DNA from: Macrostomum hystrix
Taxonomy: Eukaryota; Animalia; Platyhelminthes
Direction: 5' to 3'
DNA length: 64,000 nt
Assembly (NCBI GenBank): GCA_950097015.1
Contig: CATNEN010000030.1
Location: 4,650,001 to 4,714,000, forward strand
The notes beneath the pieces are model-generated. The model did not search any database and had not been told where the DNA came from. It saw nothing but the letters and a program-made list of their open reading frames with translations. Below are positions 3,858 through 63,619 of this stretch, piece by piece; position 1 is the first letter of the stretch; each line of letters begins with the position of its first letter. The position numbers were made by a program, and so were the translations under genes.

Positions 3858-3955
3858 TCTTGCCGTTGGAGTTTCATCTTCGCTTTCACCCTTTATCTTC
3901 TTACCGTTGGAGTTATATCTTTGCTTTCATCTTTTATCTTCTTGCCGTTGGAGTT
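3858..3955. repeat. 41-bp tandem repeat, about 2.4 copies, inside the P-like element
   Basis: TCTT(G/A)CCGTTGGAGTT recurs at 3858, 3899 and 3940. Confidence 0.85.
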
Positions 3956-5984: not shown

Positions 5985-7398
5985 TCACCTTCTGGTCTCA
6001 AGCTGAGTGAATAAAGGGAATAAAGGGAATTAAATTAGCACACAAGTACGAGCTACGCTAATACACCAGTACACAGGAGTTGCGATTACACTAGCTGGGC
6101 TATTTACGTCTCAAACTTTACTAACAAAAGTTAAAAAAATCGAAACGCAGCCCCAAAAGCTGCTGTTGTCAACTCTCTCCAAAAAAGGTGGAATACTCCT
6201 TTTCAATTTCAAAAGGCCATTGTTAAGAATTACTGTCTAGATAAAAGAATAAAATATCAAAATTTAGCTTCACAACCGTTAGTAGGTCATTGTTCCTGGT
6301 TGTTCTAATTAGCACTCGTCTGTTTCTAGGGAATCTAAACTCTTCAGACATCTACAGTGTATATATCGACTGCGTTAAAGCGTTGAAATACTCGCTGTCT
6401 GCAGAAGTCTAGTTACTCTCTATGCAGTTTGTCTGTTCACCTCTACACTGCATCCAAAGAAACTTTTAGAGAGTTTAACACAAATAATTGTAGCACACAA
6501 AGCAGCGCGTTAATTTAATAACAGCACTAACAGCATTTGAAACTACGTGCATCATATTTTGATCCATGCAATTTTCTTAGCTAAAAATAGTTATATTTCT
6601 CGTGCAAAAGTTTTTAAATATAACACCAACAGAAAAAAGAAAAAATACGAGTATTATATTTGCGGTAACTAAGACAGAAGCATTGATTTTTTCTGTTCGT
6701 CATTTAAAATTTTCGGGAAAAGGCAAGATCTAATAGAATTTTAAAATAGAAATTTGCGAACGATAAAACTCTGGCAGCGGTTCACACATTCATTCTCTTA
6801 GTTGCGCGCTGAATAAATCCGATATAACCGATTGTTCGGCTGTTAGCAGTTTGATTGCTTCGTGTATTGTGGAACAAAGCATCTTTGTAGAATGAAGGAC
6901 CACGTGCAGTAAGCACAACTTGTGTTAATCTTTTGCGAGCACGCATAGGACACTTAATATAAGTTAGCTGTGAGATATATACTCGTACAAAGCAAGTCTA
7001 AGGTCGGGTATACCAGGAAAGAAAAGTATAGAATGCAACTCGAAATGATATTTCAAGAATCAAATAGTCTACGATGGTAGTTTATACGAGTATAATATTT
7101 GTAAATAAGTTATATGCATTATACATGTTAAGTGATAATCAATGTGCAGTTATAGGGACGCCAAAAACTAATCTTATTTTCGGGTACTGGCACACTTTTC
7201 AATCACTTCGAAAATGTTTAACATGTGGAAAGTATAATTTTTTATAGAATAACAAATAGGCGGGCCACCGAAAAAGGAAAATCGGACAAAGAGCTTCTGA
7301 AAACTATGTAAATTGTACATTTTCAGTTAATTTTTAATCACTGCGAGCTGAAATCGTTCTTAGAGTAGATTCATACACCGATTGAATGGAGAGACAGC

Positions 7399-14749: not shown

Positions 14750-16300
14750 AACCTCTTGAACAATCAAGTAGAAGACCTTGTCTGATGCACTTAATAATTC
14801 AAAGTTTTTGACTATGTTGGAAATTTCAGCTGTAAATTTTTCCCGATTATTTTTGTACCTGTCCCTTTTTAATCTAAAAAGAAAACGGATTTCGTTCTCT
14901 ACCTCAGCCTGGCACTTTGAGCCGATCCTGCATTCGTATTCTACTCTTGGTCTGGCTGTTCTCTGTGTCTCGCAGACCAGCTTGTGGTTACTGAGTCGAA
15001 ACGCAGCGAGTGCCTGTCTATGCTTTGGCAGCGATAACCTTTCCAAATATTTTTCCGTAGAATGCAAAGTTTTAAATGTGTAGTAGAAATGGCTTAGCTA
15101 GAAGGATTTTTCAATCCGCTATCTCCAATAGGCTGCGAATTGTGCCTTAAAGTTGGATTTGTGGTTTCTAGGCGCCCTTGTCTAATTCCTTTTTGAATTG
15201 TTAAGCATTACTTCACTGTTCATCTTTGCAGCTATTCCAACATCAATGAAAGCTGGGTCGTTCACAATCCTAGCAATAATTGAGTTCGGACGTTTTCGTT
15301 GCTGCATCGAAAGTGCACTCTTTCAAAAAGGTTACGGTCCCAGGGTCTTCGTTTCCAGGAGGTAAAAGCCCCCCATGTTTCGGAGGCGTTTGACAAAAAT
15401 GCAGTCAATCATGGCTGTGCAAAACTGTTCTAGCTGACTAAACCTACTGGTTCCGAAACCTGCAAGTTTCCTTAAAAATGAAACCCGACATCCACATACT
15501 TTACTAGTCTCTATTGCATGGGTGTTCACTGTTCCCTTTGAGTAAATGTGAAACCCAGATACTTCCAGCTCTCCACAGATTCCAAGAATTTCCCTTGTAG
15601 AATTTCCTATAATGGAGCTTTTCTTAGATACATTGTAGTTGACTTGTTTTGTTTTCTGCAAATTTATTTGCAGTCGGAAGGAATGACAGTATTCAGAGAC
15701 TTTGTCGAGACCTTTTTGAATTTTGATCCTCTCCAAATGTCTCGAGATCGTCAAAGTACAGCAGATTGTTAATTAGGTTGCCGTTGACTTGAGTATGGCT
15801 ATCAAACGCCGAATTTAGTGCTGAGCTCAATGGGTTTATGTATAATGAGAATAACAGAGGAGAGAGGGGGCAGCCTTGTCCCACCCCATTAAAAATGCTA
15901 TGCTCCTCCGTGGCCAACCCTTCGGAAACTTTAATTTAAAATTTGGCTCCCGAGTACATGCTCTCTATTGACCTTGATAATTTCGGGGTTCACATCAAGC
16001 CCATCAAGCCATTCAAATATTATGGTGTGATCCACCTGTGGTGCGCTTCTTCTTTTGTCTGGATCAACTCTCTTCAGTCCTGTTCAAAACCCTTTGACTG
16101 TGTTTAATAAAGTCATTTTGTTTACACTGTCGTTGATATCTTGGCCCTTGAGCTTCCTCAGTTGTTTTGCATTTCCTAACTACTTCGTTGTATTATGAGG
16201 CTGGCGATTTATCACTTAGGGACCGCCTTTTATTCCTCGCAACGTGTTTTATTTATTTGCCTAGAGACCTGAGGGTGGCATCCCTCTCTAATCCAGAATT
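14750..16300 (-). mobile_element. Degraded CR1/L2-group non-LTR retrotransposon (RT and C-terminal region)
   Basis: GVGQGCPLSPLLFSLYIN, NNLLYFDDL (YADD-like) and RQALAAFRLSNHKL...EVENEIRFLF; multiple stops and frameshifts. Confidence 0.8.
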
Positions 16301-16739
16301 TATTGGAGATTATGGGCTTGACTGGTTGCACTGGAGCTGATGGCTTCAATAGGCACGTCAGGTTCAAAGACAGCTGCTCAATATCAGATTTCTCGTTTAT
16401 GTCTATGGATAAGAGACTCTCCACTAGACTTAGATTTTCATGTATACACTAAGCCTCGGCCTGAGAAATGCGTCCTCGGACTTTATTTTCCGTAGCCACA
16501 CTGAGAAAAGGAGGAGAAAATATAGCTTTTTGCAGACCATTTGATCCTTCGAGCATTCGATTTAATCCACAGTGGCAAAATCCACTGCTAGATTCACAGC
16601 AGTCAATTTATTTACCAGCAGTGACTATGGAAGACGAATTAGATCTTGTGTTAGAATATTAAAAAAATGAAGACTTCCGCTGCAACTAATCCTTCAGGTA
16701 TTAGTAATCGATTCGCTATACCCTATCGACTGAGGATAT

Positions 16740-17770
16740 ACAGGAGAAGCTGGATGCTGCAATTCCACCGAATACTCGAATGAAGGAACTATAGGCAGTA
16801 AAAATTTTCGACCAGTGGTTCGAGCAGCAACACAATCAAATTCTGAGCGGTGATACAACAGGCCTTTTCGTGTTGAAGGAGCGGCATGAATGGAGTGCCA
16901 GTGAGTGGAACTATCTATTAAAGATGTTCATGCTCGAAGTACGAAAAGTCGATGGTACTAAATACAAATCTACGACTCTTAAGGACATATTTTCTATGAT
17001 GCAGCACTATCTGCAGCACACGCTCAAGAAAGAACTAAATCTCAAGAAGGACGCTGCGTGCAAAGATGCAAGAGTGGCATTGGACGCTGCCATGAAAGAT
17101 GCTACTTGAGAGGGCTTAGTTCCTGGAGTAAATAGGTCGAACCCAATTCCTTCAAGCCTGGAGTATGATTTGTGGCGGAAAGGACGTCTAGCAACTACGT
17201 CGCCGAAATTACTGCAGTTTACGCTAGTGTTCTACCTTGGCAAGCATTTCGCTTTGCGTGGGGGCACGGAATTAGGGGGGGGGCTCTGACAATTTTTTTT
17301 GCTGCACCCGAACGGAACAATGCAAGCACACGAAACTCAAGAACACGGGCCAACTTTTTGTTGCGCATCTTCTGAAACAAGAAACAAGTCGCCAGCTCTT
17401 CAGACCGTCGAGATATTCAATGTTTCTGGCCGAAGGTCCGATTTTTCCCATGAGAGCTAGTGTATTTCATACACCCCTATACACGAATTAGAACTGCGCC
17501 TCAGTGCGGCCTTGCCAGGCCATCAAACTTTCTCAGCATGTCACCCGAATGTGCCTGCACCATCTCCGTCTTCGGTGGTCACCTACCTTTATCTAGACGA
17601 AGCAGCTGGACGGGGGGAATTCCCCCCTTGGTATAAAAACGGGCGGCAAAATGGCGTGGTATTCCTACTGTTTAGGCTAATTGAAAAACTTTCTTACTGA
17701 CATGGCCTAAGAACCATCTCAGAAAAATTTGGCATCAGATTCGTACCAGTGTGATGAAAATTGGTTGGGC
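16740..17770 (+). mobile_element. Crypton-type tyrosine-recombinase transposon remnant (DUF3504-like)
   Basis: AAIPPNT...AVKIFDQW, FMLEVRKVDGTKYKSTTL, LDAAMK, LWRKG.L...SPKLLQFTLVFYLGKHFALRGG, PWYKNG; interrupted by stops and frameshifts. Confidence 0.75.
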
Positions 17771-20700
17771 CATTTTGTCTCTACGCTGTAATTTACAGAC
17801 AGACAGACGGCGCAGCTTTAGAGCGAGGGAGAAGAAGAAGACTTAAACTGAGTGAATTGTACGAGTACTTGTAGTATATTGTACTTTTTACTGTAGAACG
17901 AAAGTTCAAATTGAGGTAAGAGTTATAATGACATGTGTCCTGACGGATGAATTCATACCTTCAAGCGTGTTTCCGAAAGCGTGGAAAATTCATAATCCTA
18001 ATGCGCAATAAATTATTCACACAAGATTCTTAAATTGTGTTGCAATTATTAGTGCGGTGAATCGAGATTCTATCAATAACACGATTCACGACCGTTCTTC
18101 GGTACATTTATCTAGCTATTGAAAATAAGCTTTTAACAACTGTGCATTGTGCACGTTCGTAGCTTCTTTCCATAACTTAATCTGTAGTGCCAGATTATAA
18201 AATTCATTAACTATGTTCAACACGCGGATAATTTGCCTTGTACAAATATATATATGAGCACAAAGAGAGGCTTAGTTAAGGTTCAGCAAGCAAAGTTCGG
18301 CAAGCTAATTTGTCGTTTAATTTGGAGTTTCATCGAGGCGACTGGCGTACTGGCACGACGATGGGTCCGTAAGCTACCACAACCACACTCCACTAGAATA
18401 AAATCAGCCGGATCATTCTGCCGTAGCTGGAAAGCCAATTTAACGCACAAGAGCCTGCGGATGACTTCTGGGCCGCGGTTCTGTGCTTGTTATCATTTCT
18501 CGACATGTTAGCGTATGGGGAAAACACGCTATTTTGGCCATTTATGCCCAATTGCGACGGGTGATGCTGTCGTCTCATCGTGTGACAATCCAAGACCGAC
18601 CACAGAGTAGCAAAATCTTTCATGAGGCTATCCTGCCAGCGCTAGCCCGAGCCCCTTGGCACCACCTCAAACTCAACCAGCAGCGGCTGGCGAAAGACGC
18701 GACCTGGACGACTGCGCGTGAATTTGATGCGTCCATATTTACCCGCGTTGAAAAAAATTCTTACGGGTATTTTAGTCGCGTTTTTTGTTGCTGTTATGCA
18801 ACTTCTTGGAACTTGAGGACCCTGTTGAGGGAAATTTGTACTTCGTTACTGATTGTGCCCGTGCGCATGTGGACGCACTCGGCCGCCACTAAACACTGAG
18901 CTGAAAATACGATTGCAACTGCGTCTGTTGAGCTGCAGAACGAGCTGAGTTGTACAGCGTCTCCATTAACAATTCGGTTGCTCGACCGTTTCGTTTATGG
19001 AGCTATGTATATTTGGTGGTTCTTAATGTCAGCCAATTGTATTAATATGGAACCGAAAGTCCGATGGATATCCGATCGAAAGTCCAGTGTAATTTTCGAT
19101 GGAAAATTTTGACAAATGTCGCTCCGCATACAGACAAAAGCGACTCATCAAATCAGAAACTTTAGAGAAACTGACTTACTGGAATTACCAGACCGCAAAC
19201 GTTGATACTTACAATGTATTTTGATAATATTTACAAACAAAAAATAGCCTTAAGCTCTGTTCTTTTAGGTAAGCTACCACTGTTGCATTTTCACTTAAAG
19301 TTTCAATTTGCTATCAACATATCATATCGTATTATATCTTATCCTACATATGGAGGCTGTGTGCTGTCAGTATATGTTGAGTTTCTAGGCTAAGATTTCA
19401 AGTGGATAAGCTTGAAAGCTTAAGCCGTCCAAAATTTATGGCCAGAATTCTCGTTACTTTTGTAACACACCCCTCATGGAAACAAAAGAGAATAAGGAAC
19501 AAAAATTCTTGATATCTTACATGGCTTGATCGGTCGTTTATTTAGTAGTCAAGCTTCTCGTTCTCAGTCCAGACGTCGATTGATTACAGGCCCGTTTTAA
19601 ACAGGCCTCGAATTGCTAAGGTGAGGCAGCGAGGCGTATCTAGCAAATTCAAAACTGGGAGCCAAGACAATATCGCTGAGTAAGACAGAATACAGTTTCC
19701 TCAGCATTAGGAATGAACGAAAGCTGCAATGGGTTGAGAACTCAAGACAACTATTTATATATCTTGTGAGTTGGATGAGCAACTCAGACTCAAAAACTGT
19801 CTTGGTCACAAGGTATATAGCACTAACGCACAACAGTATGTTGCAGCACAATGGAGCTCGATGGTTTTCGAGATAGCTTGGAGAGTGCACAGAGCACAGA
19901 GGGTGTGGGTTCATTATAAGAGAGAAATGAAAGCTGCGGGCAGGCGAAGATAGAATGGTCTAATTACTTGGCTAAACAGTTCTCAACAACATACGCTCTG
20001 AACACAGCCGACATGGGGTCCACATCTTTTTCTTTAAATCAGTCTTCATTATAGCCTTGTGCATTAGTGTACAGTGCACATTATTAAGTGTGTTATTGAT
20101 AAGTGATTCTGTTCATGCACAGCAATTAAAAAAAGCGACATAAAGGGCAAAAAGTGGTAAAATACCTTCGTGTAAAATTGAATTTACCGGTATATTCTTA
20201 ACTCTATATTTTAATTTGATTTTTTAGTAGCTAGCTAGCTCCTAACTTTTCAACAAAAATGTTGCGTGAATCAAAATCGAAAAAGGCCAGGAACTTTGCA
20301 GCAGAGATTTCACCATGCCGCTTGCAGTTTAAACTGAAAAGAAGTTATTGAATTGCAAATTTTTTTATGATTGATGTGTTTCGCAATCTTAAGCAAAATC
20401 GGTATAAAATTTGACTCAAGTTACGAGCGTATGCACATTTAGAGCAACAGTATGCTTTCAGTTATGCTTGAGGACTGCCTAGAGTCGCAAAATGGCTGTT
20501 GTGCAAGTTCATCAGACCACCGCATCAGCTTGTAGTCTGTGCCCTGTGCTATAGACGTACTAATAATTACTCCGTTAGATTTTCTGACGCTGCGGAGACT
20601 GACCACGGAACCTGACTCTCCAAACGACGTAGCGCTACCGCTCTGTCTCTCTCACCTGCCCCAGCGCGCGCTTTATTATCGATCGCTCTACCCCCTCCAT

Positions 20701-22609
20701 TTTGACCCACCTGCGCTAAACCCCTTTGCTGTCTTTTCGTCCCCCATATCTTATCTATAGTTCATGCTGGCTCGCGCGCTTGACAGCCAATCAATATACT
20801 AAACTGGTAACGGGCTTTGGGCCCATACTGGCCTGGTCGTCTCTCTTCGCAAATTAGAACATTTTTCTCTACATGTCCTAACTCCTCGCTCCTCGCTCAG
20901 CGTTCTGTGCTATAGAATCAAATGTAAACTTAAAGAGCTAGGAGGTATGCATTTGTTGAGATGTTTCCGATCTTGCCGATTGTTTAACGCGATAAGTAAC
21001 ATAAAGTTACACAATGAATATGATTAGCTTTGTTTCTTAACTTTATTATCGCCTACTGATTTTCTGTCACATCTGGCGTAATTTTTACTTTAAAATAAAT
21101 GATATACATTTACTTCTGTGCCTTTGTTATAATTTGTGATAAAAAATCTAAATTTAAATTTTGTTCTGAAGTATTATTCACATTCACATATTATTCACAT
21201 ACAGACTGTAAAAAGGCTAACTGTATCCACACTAACTAATAACTAATCCACACGTCACAACTTTTAAAGAGTACAAAGACTGTTATCGAAGCGTAATGAA
21301 TTGTTATTGTTACCGATGTTGCTGACGTTACAGCTTACAAGTCTACAGCCAACTTAAAAAAAAACTACTTCGACAGTCGACGACTCTTAGTCTTACCCAG
21401 CCTCGTTCAGAAGACTCATTTCGACAGTAACATTTTTCCCAATTAAAATTTTAGTAAACAGTGTAGGCCGAATAGACAATTCATCTAGAAACAGTTAGAA
21501 AATGATTAGTAGCTATGAAATGGTATTTTGGTAATTATAGTTATAGGCCTAGTTCTACTTTACATTTTTTATCTATAAGACTATAACTTAGCCTATATTT
21601 ACAGAGATACAGACTACAGTAGGTTTCACAGGCATATCATTGATGAAAAAATTAGTTTCACATGTTGATGTTGGTAGCTGAGTTTGGCAGCAGATTCATT
21701 TAGGGCAATGTATCATCAACCAAACAAGAATGTGTATTTTTTTAACTTCAAACCTAAGCTACAGATTTTCTATTTAAGATATGATTATAAATCAAAAGCC
21801 AAGTTATAGAAAACAGTTACATCTTTCTAAAAAGTATCTGCTTTTGCTAATTTGTCAAATAGAAAAAAAGTTATTCCTGCTTTTTATCTAAAACCGAACA
21901 ATGATTTTCATATATCTTCAAACCAAACAGAGAATTTGATGTTTGGTTTTAAAATTTGAGTGAGTGGTTTAATCTTATTTTAAGGAGTGAACTATCATGA
22001 ATTATGTCATTTGAAAGCATTTTTCATGCTCTATAAGTAACTACATTTATGGTCATTTAATTGGCAAGCAACCACATACAATCTTTGTCTAAAGTACATA
22101 CTGAAAAAATGTTGTTAAAAAGTATGATTTTGCAATAAAAATTTCTACTGAAACATCAATATCTTTCTTTCCTCTTAATGCTTCATTGCACATCATGCCT
22201 CAGCTTGTAGATAATTTCTTCAACTTTCAAATTAGTTGTTCTGTGAAACACAATAGCTTGTTTCTGTCTTGCACGAGACCAAGGAAGGAGTCAAAATTCT
22301 TGTTCCGTTTTGAAGATACACTGTTCGGTTGATGATACATTACCCTATAAACTCTATAGGCCTATTCTATTGTTTCCATATTTGTTTTAAATTTTGGTTT
22401 GGGGGCCTAAATTGAAACATTTCTGTCAGAATGTGTCTGTTGGGGGAACCCATAGGCCTATATTTGCTTATGTATCAGTTATGCCTAAACCACCTTAAAT
22501 TTTAATATAGGCCCCTAGGCCCTAGATTGTGTAAATTCTAGGACATGCTTCATTATAGGCCTATACCAAGTACATATGTATTAGTAAAAACCTAATGTCT
22601 TGATTGATC

Positions 22610-23175
22610 ATGTGTAATCTTCCTGGAAGCTTCAGTTAAAAATTTACATTTTAGATTAAATATTCCATAGTCTCAATTATGTCAAATATATCAATGTCCT
22701 AAAATTTTTGGATGTATTGATGTTGCCTAGCAATGCCTAGGCATACCTAATTTTCATATATGCCATAGTATAGATAATTCTAAGTCAAGTGCATGTTCTA
22801 AAATATCTTGACTTTAGGAAATGTGTGATCTTCCTGGAAACTTCAGATAAAAATTTACATTTCAGAGTAAATATTCCATAGTCTCAATTATGTCACTTAT
22901 ATCAATGTCCTAAAATTGTTGTTGCCTACCTAATTTTACATATATGCCATAGTATTGATAATTCTAAGTCAAGTGCATGTTCTAAAATATCTTTAGCAAA
23001 TGTGTGATCTTCCCGGAAACTTCAGATAAAAATTTACATTTCAGAGTAAATATTCCATAGTCTCAATCAGGTCATTTATATCAATGTCTGAAAATTTGGG
23101 GATGTGTGGATGTTGCCTACCTAATTTAGCATATATGCTATAGTATAGATAATTGCATGTGCATGTTCTAAAATG
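22610..23175. repeat. Three diverged tandem copies of a 175-210 bp unit
   Basis: ATGTGT(A/G)ATCTTCC...CAGATAAAAATTTACATTT...TTCCATAGTCTCAAT...GTGCATGTTCTAAAAT starts at 22610, 22821 and 23000. Confidence 0.9.
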
Positions 23176-23187
23176 TTGTTAAGGCTT

Positions 23188-23488
23188 AATTGATTACACC
23201 TGCCTCAATTGGTTCAGATGAGCAGCCAACAGCACAGCCTCAGCTATCAAGACTATCAAGACAGCCTCAAGACTTCGTACAACTGTTTAGTCCATGGGCT
23301 GGGGGGATGCCACACCCACCTTCAATTTACCTAGCTAATGCTGGTACCCATTTAACAGCTGGGTTAATTGAAGAAATGCAGAGTAAAGTGTCTTGCTAAA
23401 GGACACAAATTGTTTCTGTGGTTTTGGGAATCAAACCCCCAACCTTCAAGTTGTGAGCCCGATGCCCTAACCACTAGGCTACAACCTC
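23188..23488 (-). mobile_element. tRNA-headed SINE (family A), copy 1
   Basis: Head AGAGGTTGTAGCCTAGTGGTTAGGGC..., core GTGTCCTTTAGCAAGACACTT...AATGGGTACC; 12-bp TSD TTGTTAAGGCTT (23176-23187 / 23489-23500); homologous to 46119-46449. Confidence 0.9.
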
Positions 23489-26018
23489 TTGTTAAGGCTT
23501 GAATGCTCACAAAAAGTGTATACATAAACTGAGATATTACACACTGAAACAAATATAGAAATCTTATTATATTGTAAAGTAACTTGTCTTATTCCAACTG
23601 GGAAAAATCCTAGGGGCCCTCTAGCGGTTGGTGACTGAGGGCCACTAGAGGGCTATCTAGGTGCTGCACCGCCGGAATGCTAGGGGCCCCACTAGTGGGT
23701 GCCCCTCATGGTGCCCTATTGGGCCTCTAGCATGCCAGTGCTAGCATGCCTCTAGCGAACCTCTAACACGAACTGCTATAGATTTTCACAGTATTTTCAC
23801 AGGCACCGAGTAATGTTAGCATCAGTTTAAATTTCATCCCTTTTGTTGTGTCTGGATATAAAATTGATTGACTTCATGTACCTAATGCACACTTAATATC
23901 AATTTTATTTGATATTATCAATATAATATCAATAATTTCAATTAATCATGAACCAAAATTAGCCTTGTCTTATGTTCTATAGATTAAACTAAGTTTTCAC
24001 ATTTTCAATATAAGGATAAAATTATGAATTAACATTAATTTATTAATTACTGGTCCACTATAGTAAAGGACATTAAGAGTAACATTTGTTATGAAAACCT
24101 TCGTTGAACCATATAGCATTAATAAGCTTAAACTGGACCTTGAACCATTGTTATTATAAATAGGGAGATGTTTTCAAAAATGCAATTTTGAAACCAAGAG
24201 TTCAGTTTTAGTATATAGCATTTGAAATGCAACTTTTAGGGATTAAAACTTATTTTTGGAGAAGTAAAATTCTTTCTTCCTCATGAGTTCTTTTGTGCAA
24301 ACTAATTAGCACACAATAAAGGCATATAAGAAAATTTTTTCAAATGTTACAGCTGCAAAATCGATAAATTTAGTATGCTTTTAAATGAATATTTGAATGC
24401 TTGCATGTTATATTTCTGAAGTAACAGAAAAAACACAATACACTTTTCAAGCTTTTTAAAATCCTAATGTACATTTTATCTGTCCATGCACTTTAAGACA
24501 AGCTGAAATGGCTACCAATTGTTCTTACAAAATGTATGTTATGCTAGCTTAATTTAACATCATGAGCATTCACTTTAACATAAGTAATAAATGAAAATAT
24601 TATAAGAAATAGATTGAAAATTGATGTATTTCATGTTCACAAGATACTAAATTCTACACACACACATAACATTTAAAATTCAGTAACTGCAAGCATATCT
24701 GACAGTTTGTTTATCATTTACTTGTAAAAAAATTTTTACTTATCTTTTTAACTCAGAATTTAAGCCTTGTTTTTTTTGCTTACTTTGCTTTAGTCTACAA
24801 GGTCTTCTGTCAAACTCAAGTCGCATTTGTTAATAAATTACTAGACTCAAAAAACAGTGCACAACAAAACTAAAAAAATGCAAAAATGGAACAGGGCAAT
24901 ACAATGCTATAGAAAAAAGATGAAAAATAAAGTCCCAGGTCAATCAGAATCACTTTTGATCCTCTTATGAAGTACTTTTTGAGAGCGGTGTCCCTGAGTC
25001 CTGTGAGAACGTTCTCCCTCATTCTCACCATTAGATTCGCCAAATGACAAAGAGTGAACTCGTCTGTAGCTTTATTTTTTAAAGCTGTGGCAACAGCCTT
25101 CCTCACCGCTTTGTAATACTGCAGCATTATGATGGACCCTGTGGGTTGCATCTTGAACTAATTCTTCAAAGGGCCTTGCAAACATATTGTTGCTGTCAGT
25201 ACCAGTTCAATTAAAATCGCACTGAAGCCGGTTAGACAGAATGAAGACTATCATGTGTTGCACAATTTCATTAAGATTGTTAAGATAAAATTAAGATTAA
25301 GATAGGCCTAAGATTAAGATAAAATATATTAAGATGCATGAATTTTGCATATTATAATCTCTGAAGTCTCTGTAATATTTACTTGAAATCCAAAGATATC
25401 CAAATAAGATACATTTTGTATCTAAAAATATATAGTTTGAACTTAATCATTTGGGAGCTTGAATAATACTAATTTGGGAGCTTATATATTTTAAGCAAAA
25501 CTACAAGCCCATTTTATTAGGACAACATTTATTGACAAAAATATTTTGAAGCTAGGAATAGCTAAAATTTTAATCTTTTTTTTCAAATAAACATACAAAA
25601 TATTCTAATTTAGGCCTCTCTTGGCTTTAAAATAATTTAGCACTTAGTAACTTAGCCAAATACAATTAATTTTTTAAGTTTTCCCTTTACTTTGATTTGT
25701 AGCTTAACATGCAAACTTAAGTCTAGTACAAAATAGTTTACATGTAATGCATATTCTTAGAACTAATTTAGCATAGACTGTAGTCAGGAAGGCCAATGGC
25801 AATAGGATAGAAAATTCCATTTCACATGAAGGATCCTGGTACACTCTTTGCACAATCATTGTATATAACAATGTTCCAGGTGCCTGTGATACAAAATCAT
25901 GGCACATGAAACTGGTTGCTTCAAAATATCAGTGAGGGCATAGCTTAACTAGCTTACTAGCTAACTTTTCAAACAAACAATCTAGCTAGTATTTTTTTAT
26001 TAGGCTACCTATCCAGGC

Positions 26019-51956: not shown

Positions 51957-54737
51957 ATGTCTGCTGCTGCAGAGGTGGAACAGGGCTTTATCGATTTCGA
52001 AGTCGACAGTGAGTTAAAAGAGTGCTTATACAGCGACTGCCGCAAGCAGGGACCACAAGACTCCAGAAACAACTCGTCCGCTAACCCTCCAAAGGGTGAT
52101 GGAACCCGTAAAGAAGTGGTTAGTAAACTTTTTCTTTTCCGTTGCCCTGAGCTGCCATTACTTAGTCGAGTCCTGTAGAATGTGATGAGAAGTAATTCAT
52201 GCTAATTTGCATATTTGGTCTAGAGTACTCACTAAAAACTTGCTTATTAATTGTGAAAAAGTTTTTCATTACCTTGTATTTCTTAAAAAACGAATAGTAC
52301 GCAACATCCCGGACAAAAGCACAAGTGCCCCCCCACAAACTCTAAATTATATTTCTAAAACAATGCAAACCAGGATTTTGCACGCACCGTACTATGCGCA
52401 CAGTGCTAGAATCCACTTTCTTTCTGCTCTCTTTATGGCAGAGATATAAGGAGGGAGTTTTAAAGAACGAAAACCAAGCTGCATGTCTAACCTTCCTCTG
52501 AAAGTCATTCAGAATCAATTGCTAGGATCAACATTTTTTGCCACAGTTCATATGCTTTTCTTGCTGCAGAGGCTAAATTCAGCAAAAGCCCGAAAGAAAT
52601 CGCCAGAATTCCGGCACGGTTGCTCAACGCCAGCGCGGTCACGCTTCGAAGTAACAAGTTCCAGTCAGGTTGTTCAAACGGTAGTCCTGTGGATTTGCAT
52701 CAGAAAGCATACTTACAAAAACTATTTGTGGCAGTTTTTGCATCAAGGTCGCTTCCAAGGGACGGAGGCCTACAAAAATCTGTCACGTTGGACTACCCAG
52801 CTGCGAATTCGAATGAACCGCAGAGTTCCCTTCGGCTACCTGCTTCGCGGCCTTCGCTCCCGCCTTGGACTCAGCACTAACGTTGATGCTGTCAAACTCT
52901 GTTTAGACGGCTTCTATGGCATGATTGGTTTCGGTGACATCTTCGGAAACTATGGGGACGGTGAGTTGTAGGCCAGGTTGCTTGCTTTTTTCTGCTAACG
53001 GGATTACTTACTTACTTAATTGCAGGGGGCCTGGGGAACTTGACGCACAAGCGCAGGAACGGCATGCCCTCAGGCCGGCGAAATAGGCGGGAGTCGCCCA
53101 TCGCGCCATCTAGACCCCTGGAAACAGGCACCTCACACACAGCAGCAAGCAAAGCGGGGAAGGGGGCGGCAGCCGGAGTGCCTCTCACCCCAGGCCCGCA
53201 CACGCACAGAGCTGACCAAACCAGGGGAGGACTTAGATGCCTGAAGGGTAGGGACGAGAGGACCAAGCCACGCGCGCAGACGGCTGCTGAAACCTCGCCG
53301 CTCAGAGCACGCATGGCTGGTGCACACCCGCCCCACCCCATACAACGCCTCACACCCGGCCCAACGCACAAACACAAACACAAAGAAGCAGGCATGCAGA
53401 AGGCAGGGGTTAAGCTATTTTAAATTAGCTTTGGTTGCACATAATAAGGTGCATCTCCGCAAGTCACTACTTCGCAGACCCCCAACTAAGCCCCGAAATA
53501 ATCGTGACTTGGAGGGAGGAACGAACCAGCGACCATTGGAAAGTGAGGCAGCGACATTAGCCGCTGACCCACTCACCCCCTTCTGCTAACGGGATATAAT
53601 TAACTTGAATATTCTAGGGAACTTTAGAGAGGTAGCCTCTTTTGTACTACCTGCGAAGCATTTAATTCCTTTACGCAATATTTGTTTGCTCTTATTGTCA
53701 CATTCAGCTCATATTCAAAGTAAAATGAAAATTATATAGGTGTAAGTTTCTTTATAAACCCTTGGTTTCTGTAGTTCACTGTGAAGGTAGTCTGCGGTAC
53801 GACAGCAAGTGATATTAGTAATTAAATTTGAGCATATTCAGTATAATTAGAAGTTGGGTTCGAATCTAACGGAATATCGAATTCGCGTCCTATTTTTAAT
53901 TTAGCTTCGCTTGTCTCTCAACGCCTGAAAACAGATATCAAAAGCAGAACATCAACACCACAATATGGCATCACAACATACTATCGAATAAATATTAGGC
54001 ATAAAAAAATATAAACTTTTACTTTCATTACAAACATAATAATTAAGATAATTATGAAAAAAATAATTACATAAAATAAACTGCAAAAAGCACGATCAAT
54101 AAGTAATCTTAAATCAAAGCTGATTATAAATGCTAGGTTAACGACTAGCATCTACGTGACAATTCGCTACTCAAACTGCCTCCACAAATGTGATATTACA
54201 TTTGCTTCGGCATTGACTTAAGGACCATATGGGTTCCTAACATTCGCTTCAACTGGCTCTACCGACCCCAGGAGTCGTACCATGGATGGAGATATCAAAC
54301 CAGTCCACAGCTGACACCCTTCAGCTGCATGACGGTGACATTATATTCGTGAGCTGCTCAAATGAAAAGTTAGAAAGCCTAGCCCGAGCCAATCAAGCGA
54401 AAATTATTTTCCAGTCATCGGACAGCACCCACAGCGCTGGAAACATTGATCAGGAAGCTTTCAACGAACATAATGCTTCAGAGCTCGAGTCAGTGCCTCC
54501 TTTCACTTCTGGTCGGCTTCAATCTGATGACAAGCGATCCCAGCCAATTAGTCATAACGCTCTTCCTGTGATGGGCACTGTGACTCAGCTGCCGATGTAT
54601 ATGGCTGAAGTTTTAGTCGAACTACCTCAACTAATAAAGGCGCTGTCATTAGCACTGCATGAGCGTCAGCCTATGTACATAGCCACGGCGGCCATCTCAG
54701 CGGAAAGTCAGTTCTGCCAGACGGATTTTATCGATAA
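51957..54737 (+). CDS. Uncharacterised protein with a SUMO/ubiquitin-like domain; 3' end unresolved
   Basis: Exons 51957-52118, 52570-52960 and 54272-(54737, 54843 or 54888) in matching phases. LRIRMNRRVPFGYLLRGLRSRLGLSTNVDAVKLCLDG and, across the intron, EISNQSTADTLQLHDGDIIFV match the SUMO/Rad60-SLD pattern (FKIKxxTPLxKLxxAY...LFDG...TPxxLxMEDGDxIxV). Confidence 0.65.
53005..53580 (-). mobile_element. tRNA-headed SINE (family B), about 576 bp
   Basis: Head GGGGTGAGTGGGTCAGCGGCTAATG...GGTTCGTTCC; (TAAG)n tail; 15-bp TSD TTCTGCTAACGGGAT (52990-53004 / 53581-53595). Confidence 0.8.
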
Positions 54738-55419
54738 GTCAGTCCTTTTGTGCTTTTTAGATTTTGTCTACCTTCTGTTTATCGTAGCAATTGTTTTAAT
54801 TACTTGTAGCAACTTTTATTCCCAACGTCACCTTTCTCACTTAGTAAGTAGGCATCAGACTTCGAAAAGTTTAATTCAGATTTGTTTCGTGAGTAAGCTT
54901 GTCACGTCAATGCTTTTCAGTTGAGTCAGTCGTCAGTTGAATTAAAATGATTCCGCATCTAGCGAGGTTGCAATAAGGTTGCTATTACGATTTACAAGGT
55001 ATTTGAGGTAGCGAGACGCAATAAGGACGACTTACTGCTTGATATCTAGTTGATTATTTTCAAGGCAGTTTTTGATATTCTGAATTCGCGGTTTCATCAT
55101 TTCGTACCTACGACTATGGATGATTGTCTAACTTTTACTAGTCAAAAGGCTGCGGCAGCCTAAATTCGACGATTATTCTCAGATTCACTGCAGAAAAATC
55201 TTCAACGGTCAAATCGATAAAATACAAGTACTAATTTCTGGCTGTCAATTTTCCCCAAGCCTATCTGCTAAACACTGACGTTGCTGTCCATCGGACGCAC
55301 AACGATACAAGGATATAGAGTAGATTTATAGTTATGAAAATACCGCCCATGATGCTCAAGAGCTCGGAAACAATGCCCCTCCCTTATGTTCTTTCTCTTA
55401 CTCTACTTTTTCCGAACAG

Positions 55420-58400
55420 TGTTGCGTTCGCCTAACTACATTTTTAAATGTGACTGCCCACAGGAGACGGAGGTCAAAGAGCAGAGATTGGAAATCGGCA
55501 AACATCCTGGAGGTGTTTACTAAAGACGGGTCTGGCCTCCTTCCTGGCATCCAAAAGTTTATGCACCAAGTGCACTTAGAGAGTGAAGATATCATCCGCG
55601 TGAAACATCCCAACTCGAAATGTTCTGAAGGGCTTGACCTAGTGCTGTCACCGGAGCTGGTGGCTTCGATTCTGGATGCGGTAAACGAACGTCCCTCTCC
55701 GCGGTTGCATCCGCTACTTGCGGAGGCACGCGCGGAAATATTTCGGTGTTGCAGCGCCTCGGACGTAGACGCGGCTGATGGCATCGGATTCGAAAATGAG
55801 GCCGGTGGAGGTGTCATTGAAGAGCTTCGCCTCTTTGCCAGCGAGTTGGACAGTAGGCTGCGCATTCGTTGCGCCGGCGCTGGTGACATTACCAGCTGGT
55901 CGCCTGACAGCGCGGCTTACTTTGTTATCGACACTTTCTTTGCTACATCAATCAGCACTATCTACGGCTTAGGGCGCGATCATCGTTACCAGCCTTACGT
56001 CGTAGACTCTGCTATGCAAATTATCGAGGAGGATTTATCGCTGTTTCTTTGCAACTCAACTGGTTCGGATCCAAAGCACAAGGAAAGAGTAGATTGGGCC
56101 TGGCATCATATTTATAGGCTGCATCCGGCACCCCACGAACTGGATTCTTCTAAAGCATGCCTTCACCTTAAAAAGCTGTTGGATTTACACTCTGGGCGTG
56201 AGTTTATTGTTTTTATGAAGTCTGAAGGATGGACGTTTAAAGTTGAATAAAGTTTAGACAAAGTACACCGTAGAAATGCGTGTGAATATACTCATTTTGG
56301 AATGTTTAGTGCAATCCAAAAGTTATTGGAAATTTTTAGTTCGCATATTTTCTAATACATACATTAGATATTTTTTAATCATCCGAAACATCAGAATTGG
56401 ACGATTGAATGCTTTCCTAATTTCTATTTTATGAATGCGTACAAGCATGTACTTATACCGGGACCTCATTAATACTTAGATTCAGATCGACAAGCGGACC
56501 CGATGATGGATTGGCTTTTAACAAATTTAGAAGAGCACTCGAATGCTTTTAGCAGTAGAGAGACCACAAGTGTATTTCAAACGCCTTTATTAATATTTTT
56601 GTATATGCTAAGCTATTCAACCAATCACCCTGAAAATACAGAACACGGGCTAAAATTTTCCACTCTATCCGATGAAACAATCCAGTCCAGAATCACAAAA
56701 CATCTGCATCATCGAGATATTCAACGATTTTCGTCGGTGTCAGGTGGCAAAAACCAAAAATATAGGCATAACTTTTCTGCTCACTAAATTTCATCTCGTA
56801 ATCATTAATTTCGGCCATTCTTGTCGATTTTATTGTATTGGTTATATTGTTAATTATTATACTCGTTTTCGTTCAAACAGAGTATTGCTTGTTGTTCTTG
56901 TCATCAGAGTCTTCGACAAGAATCACTGAATATATTGGAAAGTTAGCGCAGCGTAAAGGGCGGAAAATTTTGATCCATATGGTGGACATTCACGAAAATC
57001 GGTCATTCGGTTTGAGAGCTAACGTGCAGTGGTTATTTGAAATACTTCCTGTGGTCTTTCCCTAGGGGAAAATAGCGTGGTCTTTCTACAGTTAAGAGAG
57101 TATTTCTAAGTTGTTGGGCTATTTTAATCACCTCTAGTCTGTGCCAACCGAAGTGTGCTTTTCTAGTACTCGTGATTCCCATAGTAAGAGCTATTTTAGG
57201 AGAACAAAGAACAACTATTTTATCAACTTTTGAAACAGTTTCTTGACTCCTCGTTCGCAGAACGAAACATCTCCTGGAGATCCTTTATTGGCTGCAGCCT
57301 AAGCTGCTTGTACAGCGACTACAGTGCGAAGAAAGCAGCTTTTTGGGCCATCAACTTCCTGGTTTCGCAGCCAAAAGTTTACAATACTCTACTAGCTGAG
57401 ATCGACTCTTGCTGCCCAGCCAAGCCTGGTGTTCCGGACTTTTGCAGGCTGACACTCACGGAGCTGGAGGAGATGCCTTTTCTAGGTGTGTTGAACTTTC
57501 ATGTTTTACAAATTCTTGATTGTTAGTTAGGATATTTTACACTGATAAATGGAGTTCTACAGGCAACGAAACTCGGATGCCGCCGATGCCACTTATGGGA
57601 CAGAAAAATATTTCGCCTCTTTCCGACTCAATCGATATTTAGGGTTCAAAAGCTTTAGTCAGCATAGATTTTAATGGGTTGCGGAGCTGACTTTATGACT
57701 ACGTTATAATGAGTGGAAAAAGAAATTTATTAATAATTCTAGCGAAAAAAGCGCAAAGAATCTTATATGATCCTTCTATTGCCTAGTAAATTTTGCTTTT
57801 ACATATGAATTCTTAACTGTGTTTTTGAACAGCATGTCCTCTGTGAGTATTCATTTGTTAACCTAATCAGATACTCGATCAATTACTTACCGATCAGTTT
57901 TACAATGGCTTACTATCGGGGTTGCTGGCCAGGGTCCGTGGATCAAAGATAGAAGATGTGTTTCCAGATAAACTAGCTCTTTTTTCCCGTCCCAAACCCG
58001 ATTTATCGATTATCTAACTACGCTCGTACGATTAATTGTTCCACTCTTTTCTCTTTCACTAGGGACTTTCTCTTTCACGCTCGTAGCTCTCAGAATCCTT
58101 CCGAATTTTAATTCAACTAATTTTATCTATCTAATTAATTTAATCTGAACCTCATGTTTCTCGCCGTTTTATGGCAACCACAAGAAAATTTCTTTTTTAT
58201 AGATTTCGAATATAACTCGTAGTTCGTGCAAAAGCAAATGTTTTTGCCTTGCGCCTCAAGCGCATGCACTTAACGAAAACTTGTAAATCAAGTTAATAAA
58301 ATTAATCAAATTGTAAATCAAATCAAATATATATCGTGCAAAAATAATAATAATTTCAGGAGGGCAGCGAGCGATGGCACATCATTTCGCTGACTCCTGA

Positions 58401-61400
58401 GCACACAAGCAAACAGATACCGTACGCAGGCACACACTCACATAGGTGTGTACATCTGTCCTGACTTTCTCATCGTCAGGCAGTGTAAACCCTCAGTGTG
58501 ACTTGGAGGTTGGTCTTTAAGGGCGTAAATTTCATGAAAAGCCGCCTGCAAGCCTTCTCTTCGCCAATTTAATGTGGCCTCGCTGCGGAATCGCGTTCAG
58601 GCGCCTTGATGCGAGAGGCGAACGCGTTAGACCGCTCCGCCACTGATCCCCATATGGGATACAGAGGATAAAATATAATTCTTCAATGAACACATGGGAT
58701 CAAATGAGATAAGATGCATTCCTACACCCGATTGCAGAGGCATTCGTAAAGGAAGTGTACAGGCACACTGTTGGTCAGTTTGTCTGCTTCAGAGCGAACA
58801 GTGACTTGCAGCTACAAGCTCGAAAAGAATCAGTCGTCATTACGATGGCGAGCGGCAGAGAAGCGGGCATTCTGCTTCACACACTCAACATGGACCCCAG
58901 TCTGTTCAGCCAGCCAGAGGTGATACGTGATTTTTTGTCGTGCTGTATTTTATTTTATCATTTCAGTCGGTCATGGCAAGTTTTGAAAGCTTTTTGCATC
59001 GAAAAAAGCAATTAACAACAACAAACTACAACTACAACAGTTGGCTAAGGCCGCAACTGTGTAGTTGTCAAAATTCGCGCGCAAGCACATTGTTTTCCAG
59101 CGTCCGACAGAAGCAGGTCGACGTAGCGCAATATCCTAATCTCTCCACACCACCGTGATCCCTAAAGGGAAAGCAGCAGCACATCTTGCCCGGGCTGTGG
59201 GCAGTGCTGCTCCGCTCAGATGACGTAGCCGGTCAGCTGCAGACGCTGGGTGCGAAGTAGCTGGCTTGGTCGACAGAGCTGGGCTCTGCGGTACAGCTCA
59301 TCGTTGGTAACGTTAGTGACGGTATCTGGTGAATAATGAATCCCAAAGGCGGTGCGCAGGAGTGCTGCGTTGGCGGCGTCTAACTGCCGCTCCTGCGAGC
59401 CGGTCAGGGTCCATTTGTGGGCGTTGTATAGGAGCACGGTCTTGATCACGGCTTGGTACAACCACAGCCGGCCTGAAAGCGCGGGGCACTGCAGGACTGT
59501 TCGCAGGGATCGGAAAGCTTCCCCGGCAAGTGCTCTGTGCCGTGCAGATTTTACCCTGCAGGTTTGGAACCAGGCCACCTAGGTAGACAAACTCCTTGCA
59601 GTGAGGCAGCGGCGCCACCTGCCTGCTTGAGTCTTGGCAGCGGATCTCAACCGGTAGGTTCATCGGCGCTGTCAGCACCATCGTTTTCCAGGCGTTCACA
59701 GATAGCCCGACCACAGCTGCCCCGGCCGTCAGCTTGTCCAGCAGGCGTTGAGCTCCTTCAACAGAACTTGACAGGAACGCTAGGTCATTTGCGTATGCCA
59801 GTATGGAAAGTCGCTTTTCCGGATGTCGCCTTCTCGTTCTGCGGCAGATCAGAAAGCAATCGAAGTCATCAGGAAGACTGACACGCAGCACCCAGTCCAT
59901 GATTAAGACAAAGAAAAAGGGCAAGGGATGTGTCGAAAAAGTCAGACAGGCCGTCTGGAGTCACAACTGGTCTCCTGGTACACCTGGCCATCATAGCCGT
60001 CACCAGCCACTCAGGCACGTGGTACGCGCGCAAAATGGTCGTGATGATTCGCCTCGACATCGAATCAATCTACGAAGACGCAGACGAGGATTAATTGTTG
60101 GATGCGAGCCTCTTCTAAGATGCGGCGCATCGCGAAAATTTGAGTTACTGCGCCCCTGCACGGCCGGAAATAATACCGCTCTCGCCTGAGGAAAGGGTCC
60201 AGCACTCACTGCAGCCGCGTAAGTAAAGGTAAAGAAAACTGAAGTTAAAGTAAAGAGAACGGCTAGCGCAAAAGCCTATTCGGTCTGCAGGGTGTATGCG
60301 ACAGTTAGCAACTAGCGCACCTGCAGAAATGCCAAGAGGGCCAAGAAAGCCACCATTGACCAACTAAGATACCAATATCAGCCGGCAAGTGTTCCTAACG
60401 CTGGCATCCACGGACCCGGCGTCAAAGCCGCGAGAAGCACCGGTGTTCATAAACTGTAATTCTGGTCGGACGAGCCAAAATTCCTCGGAGTCACCTTCGA
60501 CAAGCGGCTATCGTTCAGCTATCGCACGTGGCAAATATCACTGTGGACTACAGAAGAAGACTAAACCTCATGCGCAAGCTGGCAGGCACGGGCTGGGGGA
60601 TCAGACGCTGAACTGATTAACCAGACTTATATCGCCACCATTCGCATTTAGATCTTGTACGCAGTGGTTGCATGGACGCCTTGGATCAGCAAAGAGCTCT
60701 GGGTGAGGCTGTGGTGGCGCGCCATGCAGCGCAAAGAATTATCACGGGCCTGATGGTGACATGCGCTGAGGGCGGAGAGTGGCCTTAACCCGATCCAGGA
60801 GGTAAACAGTTCGTTTAGGGCCACCAAATTGGACAGGCGCACAGAGAAAGGTTCGCTTCGTTGGCATCTGGTGCACACCAAAGCAGAGGCTAAAAGGAAC
60901 AGGATGGAGAATTAAGACGCAGGAAGTACTCAGGACAGCGGGACTCACTCGGTCCCCAGAATCCCGGACGAGCTGAGCATGCCCCCGTGGAGCGCGTGGC
61001 ATATGGAACGGAGGTCAAGAGGAAGGAGGTAGAGAACAGACGGTGGAAAAGAACAAACGACACACCGAAGAGACAGTCTGGGAGGCCGCTAAACAGACAT
61101 AAATCTTCACAGATGGCTTGGTCCGGGAAGATCACGGAGGCAGCGGAGTCATTATTGCGGAAAACGGGCAGATAGAGACCGGAGAAATCCTCGTAGCAGG
61201 CGGCAAGCCGTGCAGCTCAATGATGGCTGAGCTTACAGCCATCCGGACGGCACGACAACTAAATGGGGAGAAGGCGGTAATCTTTTCGGGCAGACGAAGC
61301 GCAGGTCACGTGTGCCATCCGGGCCGTTGCGGCGAAGCTCATGGCGAAGGGAACACTGGCGATGCTCTGGGTGCCGGCCCATTGCGGCCTGTACGGGAAT

Positions 61401-63047
61401 GAAGCAGCTACCAGCAAGAGAAGCTGCTGCTGGCCGGTACGTCCGGTGCATGTTTAAAAGAACACTAAGAAATGCCGGACTTGGACACACGACAGGAGCC
61501 AGCGCACGTACGAAGGCCAGGATGGTAGGTCCAGGGCGCATTTTAGGAGCCGGACCGAAGCGGTGAGGCTACGGTGCTTCAAAACGGGACACTCTCTCGA
61601 CCTGGCCGGTTACTAGGCATGGTATAAGATAAAAACTGCCTTTGTTGCCAACTGGAAGTTGAAAGCGCAACGCAACTTTTCCTTTGCAGCGCAAGAGCAC
61701 CTATGCGAATGCCCAACTACGTTTGGGACACGGCAAAAACTTTGTATTTTTACTATCGCCCACTTGTGAAAGAACGAGCCCGCATCCTTTAGGTACTGGG
61801 AGAGGCTGCAAAAGAAAAGTGGAGACAACACTAGCACGCACCGTTATCGCACCAGTAATGCAGCGCAAGATTACTTTCGGCAGCAACAACAACAAGCACC
61901 CTGTTGTACTATTTCGCGGTTCAGGACATGAGTGAGATTCTACGGTGCTCATCGATCTTGACAGAGCCAGGATTCTTTGGGATTCCAACATTACAACAAT
62001 CCAACAATACAACAGGGAACTGTGTTCAGTTCGCCACAGTTCCCTGTGTGTTAGCCCTCGGTGAGCACACAGTTCATCACTCGCGTAGCTTCCTGCGCCA
62101 CTCGAGGGGACGCAGCAACTCCACTGGTACGTCGTCAGGTCCCGTAGCCTTGTTTATAATAAATTAAAAAAATATTATTAACTTAAGGCTCCACTGATGT
62201 CGAACAAAAGAGCAGGAATTGTAAATCGTCACACTATACGAGCCTCTTAGTTTTGTTTTACGAGGCTTCACAGAGCCCATTATTAATGGCGACTGACTCC
62301 TTTTAATTGATGATTCTACGCTCGTAAATGAAGCAACTCTTACGAAAGCAACTAAGCAACGAAAATATGCGAGGCCAGCAGGCAGGATTCTGAATAACTT
62401 CTGTCTAGGGTTACTACTATTGTTTTATTTCATAGACTATTTTTTTATTTATACCATTTATTTTACATCGACAGCCTTTCTCTGAAGCACGTGAAGTACG
62501 TGCGCTAACGTTCACCCTCAAGTGCACACTTTGAGGATCCCTCCTTGACCACTTTTTGCCAAAAAAAATTTTCTGTTATATAATTTTATTATACATTACT
62601 TTATATAATTTTAGAATTTTTCTTTTTTATTTCATTACATTTACGAGCGTATATAATGAAATTTCTATTGCACTTATAATAATATTATTGTGTAATTATT
62701 GCTACTCGTCATTTAGTTATTGTTATTTCCATTTTTATTAACAGCAATATTAATTTTTTTATTTATAGCCAAGTTTATTTTGAACTCTCGCTTCATAGGA
62801 GTTTAAACCGCATCGTTTCCTGCATGGCAGCCGGGCCACTAAGCTGTTTGCGCTGCCATTCGGCTATATGTGGCCGCGGCGTCGCCTGGGTTTGCTGAAG
62901 CTAAAGCTGTTCCTGTTTCTCCTACTAAGTCAATACAAGCTTCGAGCTGGCCAGGTTCCGACTGCACAGTCTAACGATGGCCTCCTTGGTGTTGAAATCC
63001 TACCTTGGACTGAAGATTTCGCCTTTGAGATCCAACCAAGGGGTTAA
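55420..63047 (+). CDS. Cytochrome P450-like protein (CYP7/CYP8/CYP39-clan-like) lacking the axial cysteine
   Basis: Exons 55420-56197, 57261-57485, 58738-58919, 62799-63047 sum to 1434 nt (477 codons plus stop) with no internal stop. Motifs SW.PDSAAYFVIDTFFATSISTIYG, AAFWAINFL..QP, EEMPFL/EAFVKEVYR (ExxR), LNMDPSLFSQPE/EFKPHRF, LPFGYMWPRRRLG. Confidence 0.85.
58345..58651 (-). mobile_element. tRNA-headed SINE (family C), near full length
   Basis: Head GGGGATCAGTGGCGGAGCGGTCTAACGCG...; (ATT)n tail at about 58345-58360; homologous to 875-1050. Confidence 0.7.
59012..62150 (-). mobile_element. 5'-truncated RTE-clade LINE, split by a nested insertion
   Basis: KATGPDDVPVELL and GIPKNPG...HRRISLMS (about 62150-61895) continue into LDPFLR...FRPCRG...QIFAMRRILEE, PFFFVLIMDW, LAYANDL, FVYLGG, TVLLYNA..WTLT; (GTT)n-like tail near 59015-59040. 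Confidence 0.85.
60224..61893 (+). mobile_element. I-group (RNase H-bearing) LINE 3' fragment inserted into the RTE copy
   Basis: KFLGVTFDKRLSF, LNLMRKLAGTGWG, AELTAI, LWVPAHCGLYGNEAA (RNase H); ends in (AAC)n; degraded. Confidence 0.75.
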
Positions 63048-63619
63048 AAGGGCGCAACATTCACAAAATTAGTACCTGGACTACAATTGTACATATTCAA
63101 GCATATGTTTTGCTGCTTCAGGTTGACTCGCACAAGTGTATAAGTCCTTATTCTTCTTTTTTAGATAGTTTAAGCCGAATCGGATATTTTTCTTTGTAAT
63201 GTACTTTAGTGTCAAAATAGTTATTCATGCCTCTTTAACTTGTACATAATGAATGTATTTACCTACTTAACGTTTCTTTCTTTGGTACAGGGGAGCTACA
63301 GTTATTGGATTAGTCATTGTCATTTTGGTAATTTTTTAGCTATTTTGAATATCTGCAACGTTATTTCTCTTTAGAATAAAATTCAAATACATCTTTATGA
63401 TATTGCCTTGAATGGTGATAGACAAAAAACGGACTCTTGGAAAAGTAATGATCATGCGAAATGTTTAGAATAATGGCTTCTGTCGACATTGATCACTTTA
63501 TGGTGAACCCATCAAACTAGACGATGGAGCTCGACTTTTAAGCTTATTATTCTAATATGATAATATTAGATGGCCTTCCATATGCCACAATTTATCAGAG
63601 CTTATCATGCGGCAAGTAG

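Follow-up and report, generated by a model that had tools for sequence, protein, structure and literature searches.

A conserved and expressed cysteine-less cytochrome P450-like protein in the flatworm Macrostomum hystrix

We describe a gene for a cysteine-less cytochrome P450-like protein in the flatworm Macrostomum hystrix. The gene lies at positions 51957-63047 of a 64,000-nucleotide stretch of contig CATNEN010000030.1 (GenBank assembly GCA_950097015.1, positions 4,650,001 to 4,714,000 of the forward strand), referred to here as the window, and comprises seven exons with an open frame of 802 codons. In its C-terminal domain, the loop that would carry the heme-ligating cysteine holds a tryptophan (Trp745) and no cysteine. 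The gene is under purifying selection and is expressed, and it is neither a dead gene nor an assembly error. Judged from its conserved sequence, the protein is, on balance, most likely a binding or regulatory module without thiolate-ligated heme.

The tryptophan codon lies in a spliced transcript

Contigs from four public runs (X2, X3, X6 and X9), rather than raw reads, were aligned to positions 57200-63100 of the window. In X2, X3 and X6, which represent three samples from two studies, single spliced contigs of 1091, 2597 and 2948 nt, respectively, span 57261-57483, 58736-58917 and 62797-63100 with no other letters and no gaps. The skipped lengths of 1252 and 3879 bases, at GT..AG borders, correspond with a cut offset of +2 exactly to the junctions 57485>58738 and 58919>62799. 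The loose end of the X6 contig before 57261 equals window positions 56168-56197, so junction 56197>57261 is also used. A spliced transcript thus joins the last four exons exactly, and the last three show no differences. Automatic typing guesses these runs as 'DNA?' or '?'; their depth (8-67 in exon bins versus 0-2 in unique intron bins, with 30-54 Mb of contigs per run) and their splicing pattern are those of RNA and not of genomic DNA or a retrocopy. Run X9, from another organism, matched repeats only.

Because independent samples read it identically in spliced contigs, the TGG codon is real and its exon is the one used. An artefact would take the form of a base or assembly error at 62871-62873, or of a mis-spliced model hiding a cysteine-bearing last exon. 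Nothing was found in its favour, and the use of contigs, which drop rare variants, leaves it a little room. We give it a negligible probability, since X2, X3 and X6 all read the same TGG in the same exon, the last exon of the M. lignano gene on locus L001 is the same and also encodes Trp, and no second P450-like C-terminal exon appears among the open reading frames listed for the region.

The tryptophan and its surroundings are conserved in Macrostomum lignano

We searched 1.84 billion representative proteins exhaustively with HMMER, using the largest exon as query, and obtained one true relative, Macrostomum lignano P0001 (E = 2e-64); the other match, P0002, is a Myb/SANT repeat protein and was set aside as spurious. 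Word-index searches of 5.8e9 proteins added M. lignano P0004 (798 aa, BOX15_Mlig033662g3) and P0005 and, with the whole protein, residues 340-798 or residues 575-798 as query (E ≤ 10), returned M. lignano copies only. The window protein and P0004 are 54% identical over 780 aligned columns and share the same domain order. P0001, P0004 and P0005 all have Trp at the same position, and their WPRRRLGLLKLKLFL is identical to that of the window protein. The literature yielded no paper on Macrostomum P450s and none that deals with the locus tag of the M. lignano gene.

Between the two species, the non-synonymous distance (dN) is 0.36 and the synonymous distance (dS) is saturated (>1.8). Their ratio, omega, is ~0.13 for every domain and for the entire protein by NG86, and ~0.2 by YN00 for the P450-like part; with dS saturated and a single species pair available, these are upper-bound style estimates. 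The linker alone, at 30% identity, shows no constraint. Of all identical runs in the protein, the three longest are the 16-aa I-helix segment CLYSDYSAKKAAFWAI, the 15 aa of WPRRRLGLLKLKLFL that open with the Trp, and the 14-aa K-helix segment EMPFLEAFVKEVYR with the ExxR motif; all three are shared with the M. lignano orthologue, whereas the linker is unalignable. Because the segments that surround heme in true P450s are the most constrained parts here, the remodelled pocket, and not merely the fold, appears to be functional.

The initial annotation, made from the window sequence alone, had favoured a conserved protein over a dead gene, a view borne out by an omega far below 1, by an orthologue that carries Trp and not Cys, and by the spliced transcript. 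A decaying or recently inactivated P450 gene (a unitary pseudogene), its frame open by chance, could account for the missing heme Cys and I-helix motif and for the large transposon remnants in the introns. It is nevertheless very improbable: the Trp change and the 15-residue loop recur unaltered in a species whose protein is only 54% identical, omega is ~0.13, transcripts from three samples have the introns spliced out, and 802 codons are open over seven exons.

The C-terminal domain is descended from cytochrome P450

The C-terminal domain of ~455 residues is demonstrably descended from a cytochrome P450. The Pfam p450 family (PF00067) scored 66.0 bits on P0004 (cut-off 22.8, E = 3.6e-18), with a match to profile positions 283-440 of 462 only, and 59.4 bits on P0001; on the orthologue, the matched stretch runs from the end of the I-helix to the Cys pocket. 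When the four window exons of the domain were scanned separately, the pieces were short, and the sole p450 match, on the last exon, reached 11.2 bits, below the 22.8 cut-off. Using a two-species profile against the PDB, we obtained the best match with CYP7A1 (35.2 bits, E = 5e-8, starting in the I-helix and reaching the C-terminal residues), alongside CYP11A1 (35.2 bits), CYP1A1 (34.7 bits), CYP17A1 (34.4 bits) and prostacyclin synthase (24.7 bits). The CYP7/8 clan proposed initially is one candidate among several, as CYP7A1, CYP11A1, CYP1A1 and CYP17A1 score alike.

Compared with human CYP7A1 (3DAX, 3SN5), the C-terminal part of the I-helix, the J and K helices, ExxR, PxRF, the L-helix and the C-terminal tail all align with the flatworm domain, the length of which is that of a full P450 minus the anchor. 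Its N-terminal half has the right length, with ~254 positions before the I-helix point aligned with CYP7A1 residue 275. Language-model neighbours, which are leads and not proof, were P450 clusters in 27 of 30 cases for the orthologous N-terminal half (at 0.91-0.92) and in 30 of 30 for the whole domain (at 0.97). Relative to the P450 superfamily, the flatworm domain has no heme Cys, no A/G-G-x-D/E-T-T motif and no anchor or Pro-rich hinge, its loop is shorter, and it is fused behind ~345 unrelated residues.

The heme loop holds no cysteine and the I-helix motif is absent

The loop reads P-F-G-Y-M-W-P-R-R-R-L-G (TGG at 62871-62873 and CGG at 62877-62879, within PFGYMWPRRR) and departs from the heme-binding pattern F-x-x-G-x-R-x-C-x-G. 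In the HMMER alignment with CYP7A1, PFG---YMWPRRRLG faces PFGSGATICPGRLFA, with Trp on the heme Cys and Pro on Pro; the loop has a 3-residue deletion, and the L-helix after it aligns well. The alignment with CYP11B1 instead places the third Arg, and not the Trp, on the Cys column, which makes the register ambiguous. The substitution of Trp for the heme Cys, as first proposed, agrees with the CYP7A1 alignment; what holds in either register is that the loop of the window species is entirely free of Cys, whereas the exact column of the Trp depends on the register chosen. The M. lignano orthologue reads PFGCLW, with a Cys two residues before the Trp, where the window species has Tyr (PFGYMW), and this Cys is not conserved between the two species. 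Thiolate ligation is impossible in the window protein, which implies that it cannot be an ordinary P450 oxygenase.

The I-helix segment LYSDYSAKKAAFW reads L-Y-S-D-Y-S-A-K-K-A-A-F-W where the oxygen-activation motif A/G-G-x-D/E-T-T/S would be expected, and the absence of the groove motif had been correctly noted at the outset; its AAFW aligns with ATFW of CYP7A1. CYP7A1, CYP8A1 and CYP74, all true P450s, also deviate at this motif, and its loss alone is a weak indication. Two cysteines at the start of the I-helix-like segment, Cys596 and Cys600 (GCSLSC, 57293-57307), are conserved in M. lignano. In true P450s, that face of the I-helix is turned towards the heme on its distal side. Other elements are retained: the fold-stabilising motifs of the E-R-R triad (E-V-Y-R and F-K-P-H-R-F) are both conserved in M. 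lignano, and the motif MPFLEAFVKEVYR is present, with MPFL-E-AFVKEVYR spanning the 57485/58738 junction.

The gene has three further exons upstream and encodes an N-terminal region of unknown fold

The initial annotation had presented a full-length gene of four blocks (55420-56197, 57261-57485, 58738-58919 and 62799-63047), which have AG/GT borders and join into 1434 nt, or 477 codons plus TAA, with no internal stops. In-phase GT-AG splicing and the open frame were sustained, but the gene is longer: three more coding exons lie upstream, bringing the protein to 802 aa, and the start of the first block is probably 55464. With P0001 as the tblastn query, the window gave collinear matches from 51978, well upstream of the earlier start. 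P0004 could be placed exactly on its locus, L001, in seven exons with intron phases 0, 1, 2, 1, 1 and 0, and the seven-exon model of the window gene has the same phases, with all six introns common to both.

For the third junction, we prefer the donor GATAA|gtcagt at 54737 and the acceptor cccacag|G at 55464, which keeps phase 2 and gives a conserved FC-to-EVF spacing of 22 residues in both species. The alternative, 54846>55420, would insert ~50 residues without an M. lignano counterpart. The X6 and X3 contigs extend 1878 and 1804 nt, respectively, upstream of 57261, lengths that suit the seven-exon model with short 5' untranslated regions (UTRs); under the alternative, the same contigs would have to be 5'-truncated. 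On the strength of the intron phase and spacing shared with M. lignano, we chose 54737>55464 over the acceptor at 55420 and its membrane-helix-like frame. By this comparison with the orthologue, both the 55420 acceptor and that frame are probably intronic. The frame at 54738-54846 has a 19-residue Kyte-Doolittle mean of 2.99 and runs into a good GTAAGT donor, the phase of which agrees with that of the AG at 55419; it may be intron that is open by chance, or a minor membrane-anchored isoform.

In the seven-exon protein, the highest 19-residue Kyte-Doolittle mean is 1.38, with no window membrane-helix-like, and no signal peptide, membrane helix, N-terminal anchor or Pro-rich hinge was found. The protein is predicted, under the preferred model, to be soluble and without a membrane anchor. 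Its N-terminal region consists of ~225 conserved residues of unknown fold followed by a variable linker, and the P450-like domain begins after ~345 residues. This region had no Pfam match (P0004:1-340) and no PDB match with an N-terminal profile. One language-model neighbour, SUMO/ubiquitin-like at 0.84, is a weak lead, and AlphaFold2 modelling of the orthologue's N-terminal part from the two-species alignment gave a predicted local distance difference test score (pLDDT) of 33.0.

UniProt gives the orthologues the automatic names "FERM domain-containing protein" (P0001) and "Protein kinase domain-containing protein" (P0005). Both look wrong, as Pfam found p450 only on P0001 and P0004, the two copies scanned. 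The FERM name in particular is rejected: no Pfam family, FERM_N, FERM_M and FERM_C included, matched P0004:1-340 at E ≤ 10. The present assignment corrects these names.

A binding or regulatory role without thiolate heme is the favoured function

The axial Cys, generally regarded as indispensable to P450s, is present in >99.5% of >200,000 homologues, and the catalogued exceptions are bacterial (PMC11703216). The initial annotation had cited insect CYP408 as a cysteine-less precedent, for which no confirmation was found: the CYP408 papers deal with a P450 of insecticide resistance and describe no cysteine-less protein. Heme-free P450-fold partner proteins are, however, known (PMC10054333, PMC11703216). 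Among them, the P450-derived glycosyltransferase activating factors (PDGAF) of actinomycetes (EryCII, AknT and DesVIII) have a P450 fold without the heme Cys and without heme, are under selection and serve another protein as partner or activator (PMC10054333, PMC3391682, PMC11703216). They may be the closest model for how the flatworm protein works, but they differ in being bacterial, single-domain and encoded beside their glycosyltransferase. No EryCII-type chain appeared among the PDB matches of our profile searches, and the likeness to PDGAF is one of functional analogy.

The former heme pocket would still be the functional centre of the protein, as its I-helix, K-helix and Trp-led loop and L-helix are the most invariant segments. 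The domain would be unable to perform thiolate-heme monooxygenation; its pocket, most likely heme-free or at least non-thiolate, would bind a small hydrophobic ligand or a partner protein. The N-terminal region would then link the bound state to other proteins, in the way that heme-free P450 homologues of bacteria are activating partners of enzymes. The non-catalytic sterol/lipid sensor, carrier or scaffold suggested initially is likewise hypothetical.

Several points weigh against this proposal, in addition to the dependence of omega on one species pair with saturated dS. The function is read from sequence. The N-terminal half of the domain gave no significant sequence match to P450. AlphaFold2 on the two-species alignment gave the P450-like part a pLDDT of 33.5, too low for pocket geometry. 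Junctions 52118>52570, 52960>54272 and 54737>55464 come from the orthologue and not from reads. Finally, the I-helix and the proximal loop and L-helix are the most conserved segments, which would also suit a non-canonical heme enzyme, in which the P450 fold holds heme by another residue or without a protein ligand and performs different chemistry.

We consider such a heme enzyme unlikely, although its probability is appreciable. Bacterial ncCYPs have Ser, Sec, Glu or Arg at the axial site, and a Ser-ligated one binds heme (PMC11703216). In the flatworm protein, the candidate ligands are an Arg of the RRR run, in the CYP11B1 register, or, distally, the two conserved I-helix cysteines (CxxxC). 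Against this, the loop is three residues shorter than in CYP7A1, with a bulky Trp on the Cys column in the L-helix register, the acid-alcohol pair of the I-helix is absent, and Arg ligation is putative even in the bacterial families. Across the ncCYP subfamilies A-T (Nguy et al. 2024 preprint, PMC11703216), the axial residue is Glu, Arg, Ser, Sec, Ala, Phe, Leu or Ile/Val, with heme binding demonstrated for Ser and Sec members only (PMC11703216). Like the flatworm protein, they are natural P450 homologues with another axial residue. They differ in that all 880 come from bacteria, that the residues listed do not include Trp, and that none sits as a domain within a larger animal protein.

What is new here is an animal cysteine-less P450 fold that is fused to another domain, is anchorless and has a Trp/Arg proximal loop; bacterial cysteine-less folds were already known. 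An animal lineage has kept this fold under purifying selection, apparently off the membrane, fused to a new domain and with its pocket the most conserved part, which provides a natural case for asking what the P450 fold does without thiolate heme. More speculatively, and in our estimation doubtfully, the protein might represent the first animal family of non-canonical P450s, soluble and multidomain, in which the remodelled pocket, with its Trp/Arg-rich proximal loop and the conserved CxxxC of the I-helix, would hold non-thiolate heme or another cofactor or lipid and signal via a new N-terminal domain restricted to Macrostomum-type flatworms. M. lignano has RNA interference (RNAi) and transgenesis, so the question is testable.

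Features of the gene and repeats in its introns

Table 1 Features of the cysteine-less P450-like gene, in window coordinates
Feature	Position	Strand	Remarks
Coding exon 1	51957..52118	+	ATG at 51957; donor GTG|gttagt, phase 0; tblastn with M. lignano P0001 66% identical over 51978-52091
Coding exon 2	52570..52960	+	Part of conserved N-terminal region (fold unknown); 59% identity to P0001 residues 54-181 (E 4e-46); donor in phase 1
Coding exon 3	54272..54737	+	Block VPWMEISNQSTAD...IIFVS conserved, followed by a linker of poor conservation; donor GATAA|gtcagt proposed, in phase 2 as in M. lignano
Read-through frame	54738..54846	+	Membrane-helix-like; probably intronic; no counterpart in M. lignano protein
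Coding exon 4	55464..56197	+	N-terminal half of P450-like domain; 51% identity to P0001 341-557, E 5e-64
Coding exon 5	57261..57485	+	I-helix and J-helix region; spliced contigs in X2, X3 and X6, 0 differences
I-helix segment CLYSDYSAKKAAFWAI	57305..57352	+	16 aa, longest run identical to M. lignano
Coding exon 6	58738..58919	+	K-helix to meander; 61% identity to P0001; both joints in three runs
ExxR motif (E-V-Y-R)	58752..58763	+	K-helix; inside 14-aa identical run EMPFLEAFVKEVYR
Coding exon 7	62799..63047	+	PxRF meander, remodelled Cys-pocket loop, L-helix, C-terminus, stop TAA
FKPHRF (PERF/PxRF motif)	62802..62819	+	Retained
TGG = Trp745	62871..62873	+	Heme-thiolate Cys position in L-helix register; opens 15-aa invariant run WPRRRLGLLKLKLFL
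3' UTR	63048..63380	+	AATAAA at 63375; spliced contigs extend beyond 63100; X6 contig ~360 nt further

Three introns hold repeats (intron bounds are given by the flanking exon ends). In the intron 57485-58738, a stretch of ~200 bp at 58382-58578 occurs as a single copy in the window and has no Rfam match. Its summed depth was 1100-6150, compared with 8-67 for the exons, in all four runs including X9, and its flanks varied among the many contigs; this resembles a short interspersed element that is transcribed and present in very many copies. The otherwise AT-rich intron 52960-54272 contains a 576-bp insert of 59% GC at 52990-53595, with perfect 15-bp direct repeats, TTCTGCTAACGGGAT, at its ends (52990-53004 and 53581-53595), which looks like a transposon insertion with its target-site duplication. 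The intron 58919-62799 holds decayed retroelement remnants at 59100-62100, with diverged copies 80-90% alike in transcript contigs; a minus-strand frame at 59313-59924 matched RVT_1 at E = 5e-4, below the cut-off.

On M. lignano locus L001, the orthologue is followed by an Arf/Ras-family GTPase gene (15485-18975) and a TB2/DP1/HVA22-family gene (21841-23653) on the opposite strand.

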